From: Mytilus californianus
Lineage: Eukaryota
Length of the DNA: 64,000 bases
Assembly (NCBI RefSeq): GCF_021869535.1
Contig: NW_026262668.1
Location: forward strand, 101,370,001-101,434,000
Direction of reading: 5' to 3'
Shown here: positions 4,356 to 47,776 of the stretch, piece by piece
How the letters are laid out: each line of letters begins with the position of its first letter
Position numbering within the stretch: the stretch's first letter is position 1
The notes under the pieces: model-generated
Seen by the model: only the letters and a program-made list of their open reading frames with translations
Database searches by the model: none
Told to the model about the DNA's origin: nothing
Program-made: the position numbers and the translations under genes

Positions 4356-5459
4356 ATGATGTTTGGTTTATGTACACCATGGTCAAGGTTTCCAATTAAT
4401 CCAAAGCAGTTCAATTTTAGACTTTCTGTCATGCTTTTCACAATGTTATTTTTCCTTTTCTTCATCAATTATGTAAATGAACTGCCATCAATATTATCTT
4501 TACCACAAGAAACTGAATCAATGAGAACACTGTATAAGGACTGTATAGTACATAAAGAAGAAGTCATGGGACATATCACTTTTACTGTTTTCACTTCATT
4601 TGATTATATTGAATCAAAGTTCATAGCAAATCAAAATGCTTTAAAGAACTGGAAGGCTATCGAAGGTGTCAAAAACTTTGTTCTTTTTACAAACTGTAGT
4701 AGAGCACGTAAACTTGGTAAATCAATGAATTTTGTAGTACTACCAGTTATGGATTCAGCAATCGAGGGAGTTCCTGTCTTAAAATCAATGTACTTGAAGG
4801 TTTTAGCCTTGTACCCTACATCATATATAATGTTTTCTAATGCTGATATAATGTATGAAATTGATTTGATGGAAACAGTCAGATTTGTGAACAGTTTTGT
4901 ACAGGATGAAGGATTAGCAAGGAAACCTGTACTAATTGTTGGAAAGCGAACAAACTTGGACATTGACAGTGGCAAAAATGAATCATGGAAAAGTCTGATT
5001 AAAAAATCTGCTACATTAGGAACAAAGTTTAATGCTGATGCACTGGATTATTTCATCGTTGATAGAAAGTTTCCTTGGAAGGCATTTCCGAAGTTGGTAA
5101 TTGGACGTGTTGGTTATGACAACTGGATTGTAGCATTTTCTCGTTATAAGAACTTCACAGTAGTAGATGCGACAGGTTCGATATTGGCAGTACATCAAAC
5201 TATCAATGGTGCAAACTTTGAAGGATTCTCACACCATCATTTCTCATACAACCGTGACTTAATAGCAGAATCACTGCCTTCATATCAGTATGCATTATGG
5301 GGTAGGACAGAATGTTGTTACTTAGCAACTGGCCATGACAGTTGTGGTCAGCTGTATGTCAAAAACAGAACTTTAGTGCCACCATATTGTTTTCATCATA
5401 ACTTTCTACATGATATTAAAAAGCTTTTCAAGACACTGTTCGGGTTAGGATGTACATGA
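4356..5459 (+). CDS. Intronless type II membrane protein, putative GT-A-fold glycosyltransferase of an uncharacterised family (367 aa)
   Basis: Uninterrupted ATG-to-TGA ORF in AT-rich DNA. N-terminal hydrophobic anchor (LSVMLFTMLFFLFFINYV), stem, then YIMFSNADIMY (DxD-like NxD), IVGKRTN, ALDYF, VIGRVGYDNW and LAVHQT motifs, and a Cys-containing C-terminus. Product assignment is inferred from motif layout. Confidence 0.8.
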   Translation: MMFGLCTPWSRFPINPKQFNFRLSVMLFTMLFFLFFINYVNELPSILSLPQETESMRTLYKDCIVHKEEVMGHITFTVFTSFDYIESKFIANQNALKNWKAIEGVKNFVLFTNCSRARKLGKSMNFVVLPVMDSAIEGVPVLKSMYLKVLALYPTSYIMFSNADIMYEIDLMETVRFVNSFVQDEGLARKPVLIVGKRTNLDIDSGKNESWKSLIKKSATLGTKFNADALDYFIVDRKFPWKAFPKLVIGRVGYDNWIVAFSRYKNFTVVDATGSILAVHQTINGANFEGFSHHHFSYNRDLIAESLPSYQYALWGRTECCYLATGHDSCGQLYVKNRTLVPPYCFHHNFLHDIKKLFKTLFGLGCT

Positions 5460-16450: not shown

Positions 16451-17730
16451 TACTGTCCTTATATACTTTGATAGAATAGAACATCATATTATTGCGTTTA
16501 CATATAAAAATACCCAGTAGAAAATAAGTATACGTTAGTTACCTCAGAAATGGATGCCTTTGTTGAAAATAATTCACTTTAACACGAAATTGTGAAACAT
16601 AACAAAGGAACCCGACACCATCAATCCCAATAAGTTGGAAAGAGTGACGCCATGAAATTAAAGATGCTGATTCATACTATTCTTAAACATGGTTTAAACG
16701 GAAGAAAAATTGTGTCTAAATACCTCGATTCTCATTTCAATAAATGTAGTAAAATTGTAGATATTCGTACATCATCTACAGAAAATAATTTAGAAATAAC
16801 TAAAAAGGGTCAACAAAACTTTTGTTTTTAGGATTAAATATAAACTTGTATTACTCGGATACCGCTAATGTTCGTACAAGTCGTTACAACAGCCAACAAT
16901 AGGGGCAATTGTATCACGTTAATATGTTAATTCAAATTTTTCATGTTTTTGTAAAATATTTAGATCGAAGGACGCCTCAAAACCGGCGAAATAAATGAAT
17001 ATGTATCCGAATTTTAGACAGTATATGACTTAATTCCATTAAATTTTGGTCGTTGTTAAGGCTGTCCGTATATATTCATTGATAAACTTGGGACTCAAAA
17101 TTTGCCAAAATCTGTCCAAATTGCAGTTTTGAGCTATCTTTAGGCGTTTATACATGGTTGTCTGTTACGAAATAAGCCATGTTGTTGTTAGAACCTCAAA
17201 GTACACATGGAGAAGGATGTGTGATGAATAATTATTAAAATAGTTGAATTCTTTTGCAACAGAGTGTAAAAAATACAATTTTTGATGTTTAGATACATTA
17301 CATCCTTTTTCAATTGACCTTTCAATAATGTTTATGACTATGTCTGCACGACATTTTATACTATACTATACTTCAATACTTACCATACTATCAATTAGAA
17401 TTTTTCCTTTTTGTCTAATGGTTTTTTTCAAAATTTGTATAAATATCTTCTGTGATGAGATGATGAAATCTTTCAATTTTCTCCTTGACAACATTGTAAT
17501 CATTTTGCAGTTAAGCTTATCGCAGGTTGTGGGTTTCTATTGGTATCAATTGTGCACCTTTAATAGCATACTTGATTTTGTATTGTGTATAAAGCACAGT
17601 TTATGGCAAAATTTAATACAGATATTCCATACATTCTTTCAAAAAGCAACCCACCAATCTGCATTGTTTATGAAAAATTATAGCCATACTGAATATCCTA
17701 AAGCGTTTTTTTTGTTTTTGTTTGTTTTTT

Positions 17731-18352
17731 TAATGTCTCATATGCGACGATTTCGTCGCAGTATGCGAGACATAGGGATAACTATCCGGCGGTGGCTGCG
17801 GCGGTGTAAACTATTTGCATAAAGCTAAATATATTTCAGAAGGAAGAAGACCTTGATGCATCATACCTTGTATGTAGATACCTTATGTTACGAAGTTTCC
17901 GTCTGTCATATATCCATTGTCCTTGACCTCACTTTCATGGTTCAGCAACTGCTTGAAAAAATTATAGTTTTTTTCATGTGAATTTCTCACTTTTTATAAG
18001 TAATAAAATAACTATATTTGGTATGTGGGTTCCTTGCAATGACTACATGTCCGTCAGGCCGGGTTCACCTGACCTCGACCTCATTTCATGGATCAGTGAT
18101 CAAGGTTAAAGTTACATGATTATGTCCGTTTCTCAGATACTATAAGCAATATGTCAACTATATTTGGTGTATGGAATGATTGTAAGGTGTACATGTGTGT
18201 CAGACAGGATTCATCTGACTTTGACCTCATTGTCATGATTCTTTAAAAATGTTTATGGGATACTTATAGTAAAACCTTTATTTTTTAAGACTTTCAACAT
18301 AAAATCAACGACCAGTAAAGCAGGCGAGATATTTTAGCTTGTACAATCCTGT
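17731..18352 (-). mobile_element. Near-complete HINE element, family F2
   Basis: Terminal hairpin tgcgacgatttcgtcgca, (gcg)n-like tract, two cores, and reverse-complemented head gcaggcgagatattttagc. Confidence 0.8.
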
Positions 18353-31163: not shown

Positions 31164-32755
31164 TTAATATTTAAAAATGGCTTTGTCAAGATCTTTCGGC
31201 ATTGGCATGGTATATTTTACATGTGGCATAGAGTCTGTTCTCTGTGTTTTGTCTTCTTCGTCGGTGTTTTCATCAGCAAACATGTCACTGACCTTTTCTC
31301 CTGGGTTGATAGGTTTATTGTCGTGTTTCTTTAGTGTCATTGATATTTTCTTAACAATTGGTTTAATTTTGGTTTCAAGTACAGTTGTTTCCATGCATGT
31401 CTCTATTTTATGAGCTGATTCAACTGCTTTATCCTTCGAGGGTGCATTATCGTTTTTAACTTTTTTCACTAAAGCGATCAAATCAAAAGCGTCCTTTTTC
31501 CGTGAAGACAATAAACTTTTCTCTTCATCTGCTCTTTTTTCTGAATTAATATATTTTTCATGACTACGATATCTATCTCTGCTTTCTTTCCGGTCTCGGT
31601 ATTTATCACGCAATCGATCTCTATCACTACTCCTACTACGTTGCCTTCGACTGTGAGCCTGTCCATGTCGGTCAAAAGTATCTCTGCTTCTTCGCTGGTC
31701 CCTACTTCGATTTCGATATCGAGATCGTTCATCTCTGCTATTGGATCGAGAATGATGCCTGTCAAGTGATCGATCACGAGATTTATCATCTTTTCTATAA
31801 CTTGTTTTACCACTTTTCTGTGGAGAAACTTCAACGGATTTTGACATTGATCTGGATGATTTTAGAGATGAAGAAGAGGTTGATGATGAAGATGATTTTT
31901 TTGATCGGGAGCTAGATGATGATGATGACGATGATGACGAAGACGACGATGAACCAGAGCTACTTCTTGACCTTTTGCGAGAACGAGATAACGACTGCGT
32001 CTGTTTACTTCTGTTCCTATTGCTGGTATCCTGCTTTATATTTTCCTTTTCACAGAGTTTTGTTTCATGTTTCCTATCTTTGTTTTTTAAGTGCTCGTCA
32101 ACATACGCCTTCTCGTCATTTAAATGAATTCGGTCATCTTGACGATCACGATCATCGTATCGGTCACGGTCAATATGAGACTGGTATTGGTCGCGCTCAT
32201 TTATTTGTTTACTATGATCTAATGAATAACGATCATATTGGTTTCCCCTTGATAAATGTTCATCTCGATAACGGTAATCGGTTGGTGAGTATCTTCGAGG
32301 ATATTCGTATGTTTGGTATGTTTCCCGATTTCGATCAAACGGGTGTTTATAGTAGTCATACCGGTTTCGATCTAAATCACGATGTGGACCAAGGTCAAAT
32401 GATTCTAACGGTTGGTATGTTTGTACTGAACCAAAGGATCTGTCATCGATGGCTCTTCTATTCAGTTCTGGTAATGTAATTGAATTTTCATCGTATAAGA
32501 ATCTGTTTTCAGCATCAAAATCGCGATTAATTTCAGACTCATCGTCATTCGTCGTTTCTTCCGCGTGTTGTTCTGAATCCTGTGAAGTTAGATAATTGAA
32601 TGTTTTATGTTTCTCGGCATTTGCAGTGAAGTGTTGCATATAGACCCGCTCGAGATCACCATAAGAGAAGCTTGTCGTTGTGTCGGAGTCACCTATATTA
32701 TCGTAGCTATCTTTCAACATGTCCAAACCAGGAATAGATTCAGCTGGGGTCAACT
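31164..32755 (-). CDS. Large Arg/Ser-rich low-complexity exon (about 530 codons) of an unidentified gene; upstream exon(s) not located
   Basis: Open 1.59 kb frame preceded by a good acceptor (ttatttttctaatttcAG|AG TTG ACC; AG at 32757-32756). Contains RD/RY repeats, a Ser run and RS/SR dipeptides, and ends AIFKY*. The supplied ORF start is a TTG, so the true start lies upstream. Confidence 0.7.
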
Positions 32756-39381: not shown

Positions 39382-39490
39382 GTCACGTGACTAAAATCAA
39401 TCAACACGCCATGACACGGCTCACACATACACAGCACAACACTGTTGATTAGCGATTGATTTTGATTGATTAGACAATTCTGATTGGTTG
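39382..39490 (+). promoter_or_regulatory. Candidate promoter of the CUT-homeobox gene
   Basis: Perfect palindromic E-box GTCACGTGAC (39382-39391) and a reverse CCAAT box (gattgg, about 39482-39487), 170-270 bp upstream of the ATG. Function is inferred. Confidence 0.45.
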
Positions 39491-39655
39491 AAGAGAATCA
39501 CCCTGGAGGAATTACACAACAAAGACATTTTCTTTTTCGAGATAATCATTTTCTTGTTTGAATAACTGCCATACATTGTGAAAATGGATTTTAAATGTAA
39601 AACATGAAGTCGTCGAACGGGTTGTACACCTGGCAGAGTTTAAAGAAGAAATATA

Positions 39656-39769
39656 ATGGATGCTCACACATCGACCACATTAGAAGCTTTAGAAAGAACA
39701 GCAGCTTGGGTACAACAAGTTCAGAATAGAGTCGAAGAAATGAAAAATTCACCGAGCAGTTCTGCCCTG
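39656..39769 (+). CDS. CUT-class homeobox gene, coding exon 1 of 4
   Basis: ataATGG context; MDAHTSTTLEALERTAAWVQQVQNRVEEMKNSPSSSAL; donor CTG|gtaagg, phase 0, compatible with exon 2. Confidence 0.7.
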
Positions 39770-41264
39770 GTAAGGTTTTTGTTTGTATTTCTGAATGACG
39801 TATGTGTCTGCACGATTTCCGCAATGTAATCATTTTATTGAAGCATTCATGTTAATTATCTTTATTTAATATTTAAAAAAAATAAAACCTTCATTGATCC
39901 AGGCATTCGAGAGTTAGTCTAACATTAAAATGATCAATCAACAATGTACATACTGTTAGAAGTGCACAAAAGGGGGAGGGTTCCATTGTTTTCAATTTTT
40001 TTAGCAAGGACATTTGTACCTTACCTTCATGAGGCACAACAAATGCAGTAATACAATAAAAAAAATACTGAGAAGATTAAACTTAACCCCACCAATACCT
40101 AGAGCTTATTTTGGCGCCTACGGCCTTACCTCTGTGGTCTTTGAATTACAATGTTTGCATGCAATGGTTAGAATATTAAGCATTGCATTGGATGTTTATC
40201 AAATTTTGAGCATGTTTGGATTTTGGGTCATGAATTAAATAGTAATACAACAAGAACCATATCCAGATGTGGATCCAGGATTTTGAAAAAAGGGGTCGCA
40301 GGCCCCCCAAACTAGACAAAATTTGTAGTGGAACCAGTAAAAAGTCTGGATTAACCATAAATAAAGCTCCATAAGGGGCTCAGGGACCACCTAAATTTGC
40401 CCTTGATAACCCTTCTTTTCATTATTTTTATTCCGTATAAAGACATATAATATTATATGTCTCTGATCCTTATGAAATATAATCAAAATAAGGAAAATTG
40501 AGGTTTATATGTTATATTTCACTTTAGTAATAATATATTGTAGACATTTTCATACCAACAGTTATTTATTACATGAACAATAAATCATCTGCCAAACTAG
40601 TTACAATATCACATTATTTATGCATTCATGTACTAAGGAACAAGAAACTAATCCCAACAACTTACAGAAATTCATAATAATTGTTTTGTACTATTATTGG
40701 TGAACTGAGTTACATGACTTATATTCAGATTTATGGACTTAATATCAATAATAATAATCAATACTTTAATCAAAGGGGAGGATGGAGGGGAAATACTTTA
40801 GTTTTCATTTTGTTACTTACATGTACAAGCTAGAAAATAAGTTATTATAAACGTGTAGGATACAGTACTAGTAACCACATTCCAATTAAAAATTACAGGC
40901 AGTTCTTATATTTTTACATACAACAAAATAGCAAAGGTGCATTCATGTCGGGCCAAATTTAATATTTTACAACATGCAGTCAGTTTTTGGCTTATGCAAT
41001 TTCCCATCAACAAATTTATTATTACTGCCAAAATACTTTTATACATACCGGCACATGTAGATGTATAGTATATACATAATATATAAATATAATTTCTTAT
41101 CTACAAGTATTGAACCTGACTGTTTCGAACTGAAATGTGGTGTTCAAATAAATGCAAACTGATTTCTACCAGTTGTTAATATATGTACATATACATTGTA
41201 ATTAAGAGATACATAACATTATAGTCCCTCATTATAAAGAACTTCAGTATTAAATAATGTAAAA

Positions 41265-41521
41265 TTTCAAAGAAACCAAGAAGGCAATAATAGTGCTTGT
41301 ACATGTACAATAATAAATGTAGAATGTAGCATTTCAAAGAAACCAAGAAGGCAATAGTGCTTGTACATATACAATAATAAATGTAGAATGTAGCATCTCA
41401 AAGAAACCAAGAAGGCAATAGTGCTTGTACATGTACAATAATAAATGTAGAATGTAGCATCTCAAAGAAACCAAGAAGGCAATAATGCTTGTACATGTAC
41501 AATAAATGTAGAAAGTAGCAG
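41265..41521. repeat. Four tandem copies of a 64-bp unit in intron 1
   Basis: caaagaaaccaagaagg at 41268, 41335, 41399 and 41463. Confidence 0.9.
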
Positions 41522-42847
41522 CAGATATTGATTGTGCACAAAACTATCATTGATTATTTACCACTCCACACACACTTGATATTCTCCTTGCAATACAATT
41601 GTGCCATGGCAAGGTAAAGGATATTGAACATAAAAAAGTCTGTAAAAGAAAGTACATGGACAATTTTACCAAAATAGTATGTAAATGACCAGAGACCACA
41701 ATTAATGAGAGAAGGTTCAAAATTTTAAATACTTCACTCGTTCTTCAATCAATAATATCTCTTCCTTACTTTAAAAAATTGGAGTTTACATTATTCCTTC
41801 ACTGCAATTTCTTATTTTTTGGTTATAGATACATGTTTAAGAAATATTTTTGTCCTATTTGTTGGTTTTAGTTGTAAAGCCCCCAAAAAAAAAAACATAA
41901 TTGTGCTTCATTTCTCCCTACCAACAAAATGTGCCCTAATTTTTCATGTCTACATTTGATGGACATTTTTGAACAGGTAAAGTTGAAGTCTAGAACATGT
42001 CCATTAATTGTCGAAATAAAATATTTTAGAAAAATAAAATCATATTCACCAACCTTCATTTACCAACCTATGACATACCAGATAGAAATGTTGCATAGGT
42101 CAGACTAAAAAAACTATCTTCATAAAAAATCGTGTGTGCAAAAGATACATGTGTCAAACATTTCATAATAACTTGTGTGATAAAATTCAAATGTAATTTT
42201 TTTGTGAAACAAGAGCCACAGATCTTAGTACATACAATGTATGTATGTTAATTTAATCAGGTAACTAATAAATATATAATACATGTGTACATGTGTGTGT
42301 GTATATCATTAATAAGTAAAGAGCATAAAATTTATGTCTGAAGTAAACAATTAACTTGTTATATACATTCCTCAAAGGACATATGTATAGTACATTTGTC
42401 CATGTTAAGTAATTAATTACATTTGTATCAGATATACAGGGAGAGTATATAAAAGTTTTCCTTGAGTTTCAAATTACATTTTCTATTGTCCTACTTAAAG
42501 TCTTTAAGGTGTATAACTTTGTTTATATTTTTACAAGTCAATTATGTAAGGTTATGTAAATTTATGAGGCAAATGAGAATTAAAAACAATACATATATAC
42601 CCTATTTATGTATATGTGATTGATGAAATCCCAACTAAACTAGTCTAATTTAAATAATTTTTAATTAGATTCTTAAAATGCTCCTGTTCGATATGTTGAT
42701 ATGTTGCCCTAATCAGAACAGGAGCAATTAAAGGATCTAATTTTATCATGTTTATCAGATTGCAACTAAACTGAAATTCTTTTCGCACAGACACACTCAC
42801 ATAAATATTGTATGAAAACACACTGTTAATCTTTTAAATATTTACAG

Positions 42848-43015
42848 GAGAGTACAGTGGAGGAAATGAATATTGTTGATGAAGATGATGTTAAAATGGA
42901 ACCATGTGAAAAAGATGATAATAGTTTGACAGACCATCATGATGAAGCTCTCAAGATGGCACAAACTTTTCCTCCTTATATACCAAAGGGCAAGAATGGA
43001 AAATCCATAAATTAT
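42848..43015 (+). CDS. CUT-class homeobox gene, coding exon 2 of 4
   Basis: Acceptor tttacag|GAG, 56 open codons (ESTVEEMNIVDEDDVKMEP...GKSINY), donor TAT|gtaagc, phases 0/0. Confidence 0.8.
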
Positions 43016-44350
43016 GTAAGCATATTCAAGGGTTTAATTTATACTTGTTCCTGTTTCTGAAGATTTTTTTTTCTAGTGTGACTTTCCTTTTTCTTCTTCA
43101 ATAGAAGTTCTATATGTGTGTAATGTAATAATGTCAGAAACTTGAGGTTTATTATCGGTGAAAACAGAAATATTGTCATTTCAATAAAATCTCTGATTGA
43201 ATTCCTTTCTATTATTTTTTTTTAAATTGGAAAAATAAAATTCTGGTGATCAAATTTTGTCTTTCTTAAATCCAGATCTGTTTTGTTTATGATCATTTAA
43301 CACAACTTCAACTTAAACACCTGTCCAGGAATCTGTTCTGGACAGTCGACTTCAGTTTTTAAAAGTGCTTATTTGTCCCTTCAATTTCCAAATTCACTGA
43401 ATTTTTTTTTTTTAAATGTACGATATCATATTAGTTTGAAAGACTTCAAAAATGAACTCTTTTTAAAAACGTAAATGTTAGCTTGTGCATGATGACAAAC
43501 TTACAGTTTATTTTTCTTACACATCACAAATCATAATCTTATACATGTATTGCACTATTTAGTTTACTTACTGGTAAAAATGCTTTCTGTCATTTTCCTT
43601 TTTCAAATTGGGTCATGATTTATGGGCTGTATGCACTTTTTATTTGAACCTACTCATTGTCAACTGAAAGAAACAGGGTCTTCAATGGGAAATGTAGTAC
43701 TGTAACCATGGTAACATTTATTATTTTTATTTCTGCTGTTTCAAATAGGTAAAAATGGTCTCCGATATCTATTTGTAAAAAGTTCAAAACTCTGAAACTT
43801 CATGTACATGACAAAAATCAACTTTGACTGAAGATGATCTTCCCATATGAAATAGGATCCCTGTCCAGTACCAACAGATGAAGTCCCTTTATAAATCTAC
43901 CATCTTTTAAATGGGATATTGTACCGAGATGAAAATTATGTATAGATGCTTAAATTTGTAGTATATCTATAGGGTATTCATTAAACTTTCAACTTCTGTT
44001 AAATTTTAAGTGATTCTGAAATGTAGAGGGTGGATGATTGCCTGAGTAAATGTTCCAAATTTTATTTTTGATTTTAACCAGGAAGTTAATAAAATTACCC
44101 TATTACTACTCAAAATGTATTGCTCTCTTAAATGCCAGTCATGACCCTTCAAGAATTCTCCAAGAAACCATGAACATGATGAAGAGGGCTACTAGTAGAA
44201 GAAAGTATTTGAAATTTTGCAGTCTAATATATAGGGAATAAAAAATCTATCCCTCAATTTTGATGTAATTGCATTTAAGTAATGGGGGAAATAATTGGAT
44301 CCTGGTTCTAGTCAGTAGTTAAACTTGCACAATATATAATATTGATTTTG

Positions 44351-44752
44351 TTATGCCCCCGCCAGCATTAAGTTTTACCCTTGTCCGATTGTACGTCCCA
44401 AAATTGGTTTCCCTTCTTTAACTTTAGTTTGCCTCAACCAAATGTTATGAAACTTAAACTCAATGCTTATTATTACCACAAAACACAGATCAAGTTTGAA
44501 TTTTGGTGGCGTCACTTTTACCGTTCTAGAGTTATGCCCCTTTACAAATGGAAAAGTTGCGAAATTTTTCGTTTCCGTTCTCTAACTTTAGTTTGCCTCA
44601 ACCAAATGTTATGAAACTTATACACATTGCTTATTACCACAAAACACCGATCAATTTTGAATTTGGGTAGCGTCACTTTTACCCTTCTTGAGTTATGTCC
44701 CTTTATCACGTTATATGCAAGCGGGGGCATCATCTGTGTCCCATGGACACAT
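44351..44752 (+). mobile_element. Complete HINE-like element (family F4) in intron 2
   Basis: atgcccccgc ... gcgggggcat inverted repeats, two cores, terminal hairpin tgtgtcccatggacaca. Confidence 0.85.
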
Positions 44753-45004
44753 TCCCCATTTATTTACTAATTATTTATACTAGGGTCTAATAAAAATGTA
44801 CCTGAATCAAATTTCTCGTGAATTAAACCAGATCACTGCATTGTTAATTTCATACTATAAAACAATCTCATGTTAAAATATTCAGTATTTTTACAGACAG
44901 TGCGAGACTCTCAAGGATAGTCAAGGTTGTTTAACACCCTGTAGTAATATTAGTGGTCAAGTCATAGGGTGTTAAAGTCATTAACAATTTTATTTTTTTT
45001 TCAG

Positions 45005-45263
45005 TCTCACATTGATGTAAAACAGACTGTAAAAGACTTTAAAGAAGCTTTGGAAAAGTTTGGTATTTCACAAAGGTTTGCCTGTACACATATCATGGAA
45101 AACACTAGTCAAGGCAATCTAAGTTTCTTGTTAGATAAAGGAAAGAATAAACTTTGGTCAGAAATCAGCCCAAGGGGAAGAATACCTTACATTAGAATGA
45201 GACGTTGGCTAGATAGCCCAGATGAACAAAAAGCCACTATGGATTTATTACACAAGTCAAAAG
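45005..45263 (+). CDS. CUT-class homeobox gene, coding exon 3 of 4 (CUT domain)
   Basis: Acceptor ttttttcag|TCT. IDVKQ...ALEKFGISQ...SQGNLSFLL...KLWSEISPRGRIPYIRMRRWLDSPDEQK aligns by eye with the CUT consensus (INTKE...LKRYSIPQ...SQGTLSDLL...KPWSKL..GRE.F.RM..WL..PE). Donor G|gtaatt, phase 1. Confidence 0.9.
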
Positions 45264-45779
45264 GTAATTAATTGTATATCCATTGAGTTACTGGGAAACT
45301 CTTTTATTTGTGGATCATGATCGAAAAAACAAGGTAGCTGTAACACTACAGAATGCTTTTTCTTTACATAAATTTTATAGTATTGAAAATAAGCATCTTT
45401 TTCTTCATTTTTTTTAATAATAGCAATATTTATATTGAAACTGACCAAACATAAGTGAATTCCATACAAATTGTATACCAGATTTCATAAACAAAGCATT
45501 GTAATCCAATCTACACTTATAATTGTTTGAAAAATTTATTGTGCAATTTCTGATGTATCTTCATCCCACTTAGGCATTTATAGTAATATATGTTAAAGTT
45601 GTGTGTCTTCTAAAAATAATAGATACACATATCAATTTCATTTCTCTCTTGAAAAATGACATTCATCTTAAATTTTGTTTTATGTATGGTTATTTATGCA
45701 AAGAAGTTTTGATTTCAAAATGGACAGATCATACTCGCAGACAAATACAGGTATTGACTTTTTATTTTTACTTTTTCAG

Positions 45780-46570
45780 ATTATAAGAAAGGAACTAGAA
45801 TCAGTGGTGATACTGTATTGACAAAGAGAGAAAAGTTCTCTGTGTTTCAATTATTAGTGCTATGTCGAGTGTTTGAGGAAGACAATAATCCGAGTTTATC
45901 AACACGAGCTCTCCTTGCAGATAAACTAGAGGCTCCATTAGAGCGTATAACAATTTGGTTCCAGAACCAACGTGCAAGAGGTTTTCCAGCCAAAAAATTT
46001 CTAAAGGAGTCAAATATGGGTAAAGATCCTGTTGATATTCAGTCATTTTCAGGGTTATCTCCCAAAAAAGATCATGGAATGCGAAAGTCAAACACACCCT
46101 TATCTAATGGACCGTCAAGTAGCAATTCAAATTCACAGTTAACACCTCAGCAAGTGGAATCAAACAAACATGATGCATCAGTTCCTTTATCTCAGGAACA
46201 TGAGGCACAGATACAATCATGTATTAGTTCAGTTTTAGGATCATCAGTTTGTCAGAACTTGCCTACTACATCAAGTTCTCAAATGACCACTGCCCAGATG
46301 CCACCGTTTCCATTTCCGCTTCAACTTTTAAGTATGGCACAACAGCCAGTCAAATCGGAACAGTCAGCATTATCACTGTCAATGACAACAGGACAAACTT
46401 ATTCACCATTCTTGGGATTTCCACCAAGTATTTTTACATCAGCACCAACAAATGTTCCACAAAATACAGTAACTGATGCTGATGCACTAAACTTAATGAG
46501 GACATGTCGCCCAATGACTATCAAACAGGAGCCCCGTGACCCATCACCTTTTCCTGGAAATTCAGACTGA
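45780..46570 (+). CDS. CUT-class homeobox gene, coding exon 4 of 4 (homeodomain and S/T/Q/P-rich tail)
   Basis: Acceptor ctttttcag|AT completes GAT in frame. Gap-free homeodomain register: R5, F8, Q12, L13, L16, F20, P26, R31, L34, A35, W48, F49, Q50, N51, R53. TGA at 46568-46570; AATAAA at 46989 and 47262. Confidence 0.92.
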
Positions 46571-47776
46571 AATGTGAAAGACTTTATAAAGATAATTAAA
46601 TCCAATGAAATTACAATGTATGAATATTTAATTAATGTCAATTGTATGGTATATATGAATGTATTGTATTGTATGCACTTTTTTTTTTACATGTTTTGTG
46701 TTGCAGTGAATGACATTTAGAAATGGTTGTCTAGATTCTGCTGGGAGTGTGTGTTTGAAATGAAAATTTGATCATCCAAAAAGTGTCAATGGAAAGAGCT
46801 GGGAGAAAAAATATGACAGAAAAAAATTTTTTTTTCAGCTTAAGGTGACTTTACTACATTTGTATATCAATCAAAAAATTGTTAAAACATACTCTTTATA
46901 TTAAAGGATTATGAATTTGAGAAAGTCACTGGTTGATGCATTAATATGTGTATTATGTTTCTTAAGAATAATTAAATTGAAAAATGGTAATAAAATTTTG
47001 TGTCAGAGATACAATTTTGATTTTCTTCTTTTTTTAATTACATAATTGTAGGGTTATTGCATGAAAATTAAAATGGTGAATATTGTCAATGAGCTTGCAA
47101 GTACAATATATAGTCTAAAGGTATACATGTAATATTCATGCAATAACACTTTTATTGTATAGCAAAGATTGATAAACATTTCTTATGTTTTTGTCACTGA
47201 TAATTTGAATTTCTATTTATACTATCTAGTCATGCTAGTGGGAAATATTATGTCGCTTTACAATAAATATATATACATATCAATCAAGACTGGAAAAATT
47301 ACCTCAGCAAGCCTCTGTTACTCATTCTCTTACAGTTGTATGTATTAATGATGAACTAATTTCAATGAAATCAACAATAACAATTCTACTTTTGAAATAT
47401 CACAGATTAAGATTGTGTGTTTCTTACAAATCCATAGGAAAAATCCATAGGAAAACAAAAACAGAAGAGTATTTTCTTTGGAATTTTATAATAATGTTCC
47501 TCCAAATGTTTCCAATCTCCACCCATTCAGTGACAATATTAATTTGTGTATGAAATAGAGGCTCAAAGAGCCTAAATTACTGATCTAGTAAAAAAAATAT
47601 TCCGTATTTATATTAACATAAAAATCTGGACTGTAAAAATATTAACAAAGTTTTCCATTAATCTTTTATAGATCTTGAATTGCATTTTTGCTGTTGAAAG
47701 TTTTTTTTTTTTTCTATAATAGAATCCAAATAAAAGACAAAAACGCTAACATATGCCGAAAATAGTCATAATTACT

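Follow-up and report, generated by a model that had tools for sequence, protein, structure and literature searches.

Is a mussel gene that pairs one CUT domain with one homeodomain a diverged ONECUT gene, a relative of CUX, or a member of a family of its own? The question is raised by a locus in Mytilus californianus, positions 39656-46570 of the 64,000-nucleotide stretch analyzed here (contig NW_026262668.1, 101,370,001 to 101,434,000, assembly GCF_021869535.1; hereafter the window). An initial annotation, made from the letters alone, had proposed that the locus holds a CUT-class gene specific to some lineage and possibly representing an undescribed bivalve or spiralian family. We consider it very probable that the locus is a functional gene encoding a 443-residue nuclear transcription factor, that this gene is orthologous to the oyster gene Cgi_CUT1, and that its family spans all major bivalve lineages with no comparable named relative outside bivalves. 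As judged by its sequence, the gene is neither ONECUT nor CUX nor CMP/SATB.

A spliced and expressed two-domain gene

Four exons on the forward strand (39656-39769, 42848-43015, 45005-45263 and 45780-46570), when joined by script, give 1332 nucleotides (nt), that is 443 codons and a stop, with no internal stop. All three introns have a GT donor and an AG acceptor, and their phases are 0, 0 and 1. The structure proposed in the initial annotation was thereby reproduced, and it is also matched by a transcript contig. The annotation had further pointed out that the gene is broken up on the track of open reading frames (ORFs), and the ORF list indeed gives it only as four separate pieces of 57, 67, 100 and 250 residues. 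The M. galloprovincialis orthologue has an identical four-exon layout with identical GT-AG sites.

At this locus lies a functional gene that is both spliced and expressed. The protein database contains a 443-residue entry with 99% identity to the exon 4 product, and its whole reading frame is found uninterrupted on a 2131-nt contig from the assembly of a public run. This contig aligns to the window in four blocks (39395-39770, 42847-43015, 45005-45263 and 45778-47121) that end at the predicted splice sites. Raw stranded RNA reads were aligned to positions 39650-45649. The joint 39768>42847 is covered by 18 reads with 15 starts and the joint 43015>45005 by 13 reads with 10 starts, nearly all of them sharing one orientation. 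Contigs from two other RNA runs contain both joints with zero mismatches; their overhang at 45263 corresponds to the first 30 bases of exon 4. Thus, all three junctions that were to be checked are present in assembled transcripts, the two at 39769/42848 and 43015/45005 also in raw RNA reads, while the one at 45263/45780 is supported by the transcript contigs instead. Neither of the two joints seen in raw RNA reads was found in a DNA run with a depth of about 45x over the introns. Since this run spans the introns without the joints, a processed DNA copy is ruled out as their source. Overall, roughly the exonic share of the sampled words is present in about twenty RNA runs.

The coding sequence is under strong constraint. 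Comparison with M. galloprovincialis gave dN of 0.0087 and dS of 0.252, which corresponds to an omega (dN/dS) of 0.034. By region, omega is 0.027 for the N terminus, 0.009 for the CUT-homeodomain part and 0.063 for the tail. Against the transcript contig it is 0.046. For a more distant mytilid transcript the ratio is reported for the tail alone, because elsewhere dS is saturated. The initial annotation had considered the case of an unspliced locus with dN/dS of about 1; the spliced RNA and the omega of 0.034 are the opposite of it.

The exons largely correspond to structural parts of the protein. Upstream of the start codon, exon 1 includes at least 261 nt of 5' untranslated region (39395-39655, measured from the start of the transcript contig alignment). 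Its coding part (39656-39769, residues 1-38), delimited by the exon join and an RNA joint, carries the N-terminal motif LEALERTAAWVQQV kept in pteriomorph bivalves, whose members have LE(A/T)LERTAAWV in common. Exon 2 (residues 39-94), bounded by RNA joints, codes for an acidic region with the SUMO-type site VKME (residue 53, positions 42890-42901). Exon 3 is the CUT domain (residues 95-180). It was recognized by Pfam (3.8e-15, 56 bits, cut-off 24.4), by a structure profile and in the structural model, and has the family signature SQGNLSFLLDKG and RGRIPYIRMRRWL. The coding part of exon 4, seen in the exon join, in Pfam and in the contig, contributes residues 181-443 and the stop: a linker, the homeodomain and a tail rich in S, T, Q and P. 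The Pfam Homeodomain match in its product is also strong (5.7e-12, 45.7 bits, cut-off 22.9). Together with an invariant extension, the homeodomain occupies residues 194-257 (45818-46009), where alignments and model helices place W48, F49, Q50 and N51 followed by RARGFPAK. Pfam shows no further domain, so the protein has the single CUT domain and single homeodomain ascribed to it initially. In the tail, VKSE (residues 371-374, 46349-46360) was located by a motif scan and by direct reading, and IKQE (residues 428-431, 46520-46531) by the scan. All three psi-K-x-E sites of the initial annotation (at residues 53, 371 and 428) are therefore in place. The 3' untranslated region covers at least 551 nt (46571-47121), up to the end of the transcript contig alignment.

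An AlphaFold model of residues 94-257 has a mean predicted local distance difference test score (pLDDT) of 85.6. It consists of a five-helix CUT domain (pLDDT about 90), a disordered linker (model residues 92-103) and a three-helix homeodomain, with a short additional helix over the invariant GFPAKK extension. The top structural matches of the model are the DNA-bound two-domain modules of ONECUT2 and HNF6, followed by POU proteins, which share the logic of a tethered module with the CUT-homeodomain pair.

The bivalve family and its names

To delimit the family, we built a profile of the CUT-homeodomain region and used it in an exhaustive HMMER search, from which the best 150 matches (63-bit floor) were considered, alongside a word-indexed search. 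Both searches revealed a sharply bounded family with full-length matches at 233-330 bits. Every named source of these matches is a bivalve: Mytilus, three scallops, Pinctada, Tegillarca, Solemya, Saccostrea, Ostrea, Sinanodonta, Mercenaria, Mactra and Mya. A protobranch, mussels, scallops, oysters, ark clams, unionids and heterodonts are represented, and matches without a species name show the same lineage-typical motifs. Below the family, scores drop to at most 112 bits, for long CUX proteins with three repeats and for mammalian DUX arrays; their totals are high because several domains are summed. The DUX arrays were rejected as relatives, as their scores add up over many homeodomains. Among the best 150 matches (above 63 bits) no ONECUT occurs, and no protein from a named non-bivalve source combines a single CUT domain with a single homeodomain. 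The proposal of a lineage-specific family is thus borne out with bivalves as the lineage, and of the wider spiralian range suggested initially there is no sign among the sequences found. Nothing useful came out of an ESM Atlas look-up of the homeodomain, in which scores stayed below 0.8.

Family members share 50-90% of the residues of the DNA-binding region with the window protein; 33 columns of the CUT domain and 25 of the homeodomain are invariant. The CUT signature, SQGNLSFLL(D/E)KG and RGR.PY(I/V)(R/K)M, is invariant or nearly so in 12 members drawn from all bivalve subclasses, and the homeodomain end WFQNQRARGFPA is invariant; the window gene has both. In the CUT-domain tree the family lies on one side of a branch with support of 97/84 (100/96 with the Mytilus paralogue described below), and its stem is long, about 3 changes per site. 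This tree takes a single ONECUT anchor (HNF6) and zero SATB or CMP sequences, and the homeodomain tree takes a single beetle ONECUT. The gene is usually single-copy.

One member of the family already has a name. Paps et al. 2015 (PMC5322547) report six CUT-class genes from the oyster: Cmp1, Cmp2, Cux, Onecut, Cgi_CUT1 and Cgi_CUT2. Cgi_CUT1 (CGI_10006727) is given there with a CUT domain and Cgi_CUT2 without one. Both are placed in a 'CUT Clade I', described as lophotrochozoan-wide without a support value, together with four Lottia, two Capitella, four Echinococcus and two Pinctada genes. The Cgi_CUT1 homeodomain, taken from the supplementary alignment of that study, scores 119.9 bits on our family profile, and it is contained letter for letter within oyster members of the family. 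It shares 42 of 58 residues with the window homeodomain, including the WFQNQRARGFP end. Because of this score, the exact containment in oyster members and the degree of identity, we assign the window gene as the Mytilus orthologue of Cgi_CUT1.

It follows that the label 'undescribed' was wrong, since the oyster member has carried a name since 2015. Formally, the window protein also belongs to an already named clade, an outcome that the initial annotation had set against its own proposal. Nevertheless, 'CUT Clade I' has no support value and differs in content from the family delimited here. The homeodomains of its remaining members, Cgi_CUT2 included, look paired-like or aberrant and do not have the family signature. 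Since these other members look unrelated, a bivalve-wide orthology group had not been defined before. The bivalve-wide group, the CUT signature and the motifs are not described in that paper, which mixes Cgi_CUT1 with the signature-less homeodomains. Beyond Paps et al., none of the papers searched names 'CUT Clade I' or Cgi_CUT1, and the 2018 revised classification of spiralian homeobox genes (PMC6118893), supplements included, does not treat the gene. New here are therefore the delimited orthology group, its bivalve range, its signature residues, its motifs, and the finding that the two domains differ in affinity. Public annotation names clash, ranging over "homeobox protein cut-like 1/2", "One cut domain family member", "DUXA-like protein" and "uncharacterized".

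Several features were observed in individual lineages. A tandem pair of far more divergent paralogues, confined to Mytilus (proteins P0036, P0173, P0233 and P0234), was found only in M. coruscus (L005 10001-13493) and M. edulis. Their DNA-binding region shows 36% identity, position 50 of the homeodomain is N instead of Q, and the RAR.FPA extension is kept. In the homeodomain tree they fall within the pteriomorph members. In heterodonts, the orthologues P0012, P0052, P0086-P0088 and P0096 have a basic GAAKRKRG.KPQQI stretch and, together with P0172 and P0188, a C-terminal EP(D/E)LD end; Mytilus has no counterpart of either. One unionid orthologue terminates in IPDLD. In oysters, many transcripts (P0017 and its cluster of 139 members) retain the intron that separates the CUT domain from the homeodomain. 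The retained intron stays in frame and yields a 107-residue hydrophobic linker; it represents either a common isoform or unspliced RNA.

Origin of the two-domain gene

The two domains of the family do not share their closest relatives. When the CUT profile was compared with solved structures, the CUX2 repeats scored 40.6, 36.1 and 32.2 bits against 24-26 bits for HNF6 and ONECUT2, in agreement with the CUX-like C terminus of the CUT domain noticed initially. The best matches of a homeodomain-only profile were platypus sDUX (53 bits), HESX1 (45), PHOX2B (43), Paired (43) and DUX4 HD2 (38), and there was no CUT-class homeodomain among its best 60 matches. On the family profile, the oyster homeodomains of Otp, Dbx, Cux and Onecut scored 37.6, 28.9, 25.5 and 21.9 bits, respectively. 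In a separate comparison, CUX homeodomains scored 11.7-23.1 bits. A small homeodomain tree joins CUX and ONECUT to the exclusion of the family (95/98). The CUT tree puts the family among CUX repeats without support (15/0, 19/88 and 4/0). Because the CUT domain is nearest to CUX, the homeodomain is nearest to paired-like proteins and the placement in the CUT tree is unsupported, several origins remain. Candidates are partial duplication of Cux, fusion of a CUT domain with a paired-like homeodomain, and descent from an old CUT-class gene whose homeodomain has changed little.

The first of these origins implies that, in the bivalve stem, a copy of one CUX repeat and the homeodomain gave rise to a gene of its own, which then diverged, with H50 replaced by Q50. 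We regard it as possible, though only tentatively so. The short isoforms of CUX1 (CR3-HD) offer a model for such a duplicate. The higher scores of CUX2 repeats are consistent with it, and so is the exhaustive search, in which CUX proteins come next after the family and the best of them is collinear over its last repeat and homeodomain. However, these high CUX totals stem in part from three summed repeats, and the position among CUX repeats lacks support. The homeodomain fits this origin poorly, given the low scores with CUX homeodomains and the well-supported exclusion of the family by CUX and ONECUT.

Alternatively, a CUT exon may have been joined to an exon with a paired-like Q50 homeodomain, so that the gene would be CUT-class through its CUT domain alone. 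The grouping of Cgi_CUT1 with paired-like-looking orphan homeodomains in Paps et al. would agree with such a chimera. So would the ranking of homeodomain matches, with paired-like proteins on top, no CUT-class one among the best 60, and oyster Otp ahead of Cux and Onecut. Yet the gap in identity is small (18/57 vs 15/57), and any homeodomain that is little derived will by default resemble the paired-like and ANTP consensus profiles. Another indication is the phase-1 intron falling exactly between the CUT domain and the homeodomain. An intron between the two domains is likewise present in ONECUT genes, which counts against reading it as a trace of shuffling, and no paired-like donor gene was identified. 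On balance we find this origin rather doubtful. A more far-reaching version of it would have a CUX-type CUT repeat and a paired-like Q50 homeodomain brought together by exon shuffling in the bivalve stem, kept under strong constraint for about the whole history of crown bivalves and employed to regulate a bivalve-specific developmental feature. As a whole this is unlikely; if true, no other animal group would have the same combination for DNA recognition.

Much less can be said for a fast-evolving ONECUT orthologue of mussels, which we consider highly improbable. The architecture is the same, the spacing is collinear with HNF6 and ONECUT2 (profile positions 2-151), and these two proteins are the top structural matches. 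Diagnostic residues, scores and a separate oyster gene rule this orthology out nonetheless. ONECUT homeodomains of oyster, beetle and amphioxus are near-identical and have F48/M50 (NFFMNARRR), whereas the window gene has W48/Q50. Only 15 of 57 homeodomain residues are shared with oyster Onecut, which scores 21.9 bits against 119.9 bits for Cgi_CUT1. The window protein shares 25% of residues with the solved DNA-binding domains of ONECUT2 and HNF6, the exhaustive search has no ONECUT among its best 150 matches, and the oyster has separate canonical Onecut and Cux genes. The initial view that the gene is not the ONECUT orthologue is thus upheld. Finally, an unconstrained lineage-specific duplicate or pseudogene, for which nothing speaks beyond the divergence from known families, is almost certainly the wrong explanation, being contradicted by the intact ORF, spliced stranded transcripts in many runs, dN/dS of 0.03 and a DNA-binding region 61% identical to that of the protobranch Solemya orthologue.

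Predicted function, surroundings and comparison with known systems

In the structural model, the DNA-binding part is a CUT domain and a 60-residue homeodomain tethered through a short, flexible linker, the arrangement known from ONECUT proteins. The homeodomain holds R5, W48, Q50, N51 and R53. This set of residues is known from homeodomains to read a TAAT-type core. Because it is present, and by analogy with characterized proteins, the mussel protein probably binds a composite site made of a CUT half-site and a TAAT-type core read by the Q50 homeodomain. It is probably a developmental regulator, possibly a repressor, whose activity may be modulated at the predicted psi-K-x-E sites of the SUMO type. 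Sites of the [IV]KxE type occur in the tail of nearly all family members, and one near the C terminus recurs. The possible repressor role relates to PLDLS, the classical CtBP-binding motif. It is present in nine of ten heterodont sequences, with PLDFS in the tenth, and scallop, pearl-oyster and ark-clam members have PLNFS, PINFS or PLNFC. The Mytilus gene has only ALNLM, degenerate with respect to PxDLS. A co-repressor link is therefore plausible for the family and weak for the Mytilus gene.

A number of points weigh against the reading of the gene as a regulator from a family restricted to bivalves. The restriction is based on protein collections and not on genome DNA of gastropods, cephalopods, chitons and annelids, and many of the family matches come from run assemblies without a species name. 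In the literature we found no functional study of any family member, the oyster gene being a table entry. Repression in particular is weakly founded for the Mytilus gene because, besides being degenerate there, the CtBP-type motif was not matched by pattern in oysters, Solemya or the unionid.

Homeobox genes restricted to one lineage are potential contributors to body-plan features peculiar to that lineage. The present family is an unusually clean case, as it is usually single-copy, present in every bivalve subclass sampled and very strongly constrained in its DNA-binding region. Defining the orthology group corrects the clashing public names and offers a candidate regulator. At the same time, many homeobox genes confined to spiralians have already been described, so the gene reveals no new kind of system; it encodes a lineage-specific transcription factor of an ordinary sort.

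The introns of the gene harbor several repeats. Intron 1 (39770-42847; GT-AG, phase 0), defined by the exon join and RNA reads, contains a tandem repeat at 41256-41520 with a 64-nt unit in 4.1 copies (93% matches). Intron 2 (43016-45004; GT-AG, phase 0), defined in the same way, contains at about 44350-44765 an element similar to miniature inverted-repeat transposable elements (MITEs). Inverted repeats of 10 nt (ATGCCCCCGC / GCGGGGGCAT) mark its termini, and a 161-nt unit occurs inside it in 1.8 copies. In a DNA run its summed word depth reaches about 3.9 million where the baseline is near 50, and it is abundant in RNA runs too. We take it to resemble the satellite-bearing MITEs of bivalves. 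Dispersed repeats lie at 40250-40449 and 43850-44249, with DNA depths of about 6,700 and 13,000 against the same baseline. Intron 3 (45264-45779; GT-AG, phase 1), in the linker between the CUT domain and the homeodomain, is defined by the transcript contig and by loose ends at 45263. No second CUT or homeobox gene was found in the window by tblastn. The nearest upstream feature is an ORF of 529 residues on the reverse strand (31164-32753) without a Pfam match. Its region has 85-88% nucleotide identity to a region upstream of the M. galloprovincialis orthologue, where a 407-residue gene is called. Two forward-strand ORFs, 4356-5459 (367 residues) and 17328-17822 (164 residues), have no Pfam match either.

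How, then, does the family compare with known systems? With ONECUT/HNF6 it shares the architecture, the collinear spacing and the best structural match. Apart from positions 48 and 50 of the homeodomain, it differs from ONECUT by two extra residues after the SQG helix, in the CUT helix-3 region (DKGKNKLW vs NPKPW), and it does not match the near-invariance of ONECUT across bilaterians. With CUX it shares the closest CUT domain, as is apparent from RGRIPYIRMRRWL compared with KGREPFIRMQLWL. In contrast, CUX proteins have three repeats instead of one CUT domain and H50 (WFHN[HY]R in most matches) instead of Q50. The pairing of a CUT domain with a Q50 homeodomain is absent from both ONECUT and CUX. 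CMP and SATB differ in having COMPASS/ULD and a 10-residue insertion between helices 1 and 2 of the homeodomain, whereas the window homeodomain is an uninterrupted 60 residues. The paired-like Q50 homeodomains (sDUX/DUX4, HESX1, PHOX2B and Otp) are the best homeodomain matches and share the ..ERI.IWFQN.RAR pattern, but these proteins have no CUT domain, and in the family positions 25-26 read NP, not YP, and position 55 is followed by an invariant GFPA extension. Another case of this kind, likened here by description only, is amphioxus Acut (Takatori & Saiga 2008), likewise a lineage-restricted CUT-class gene outside ONECUT, CUX and CMP.

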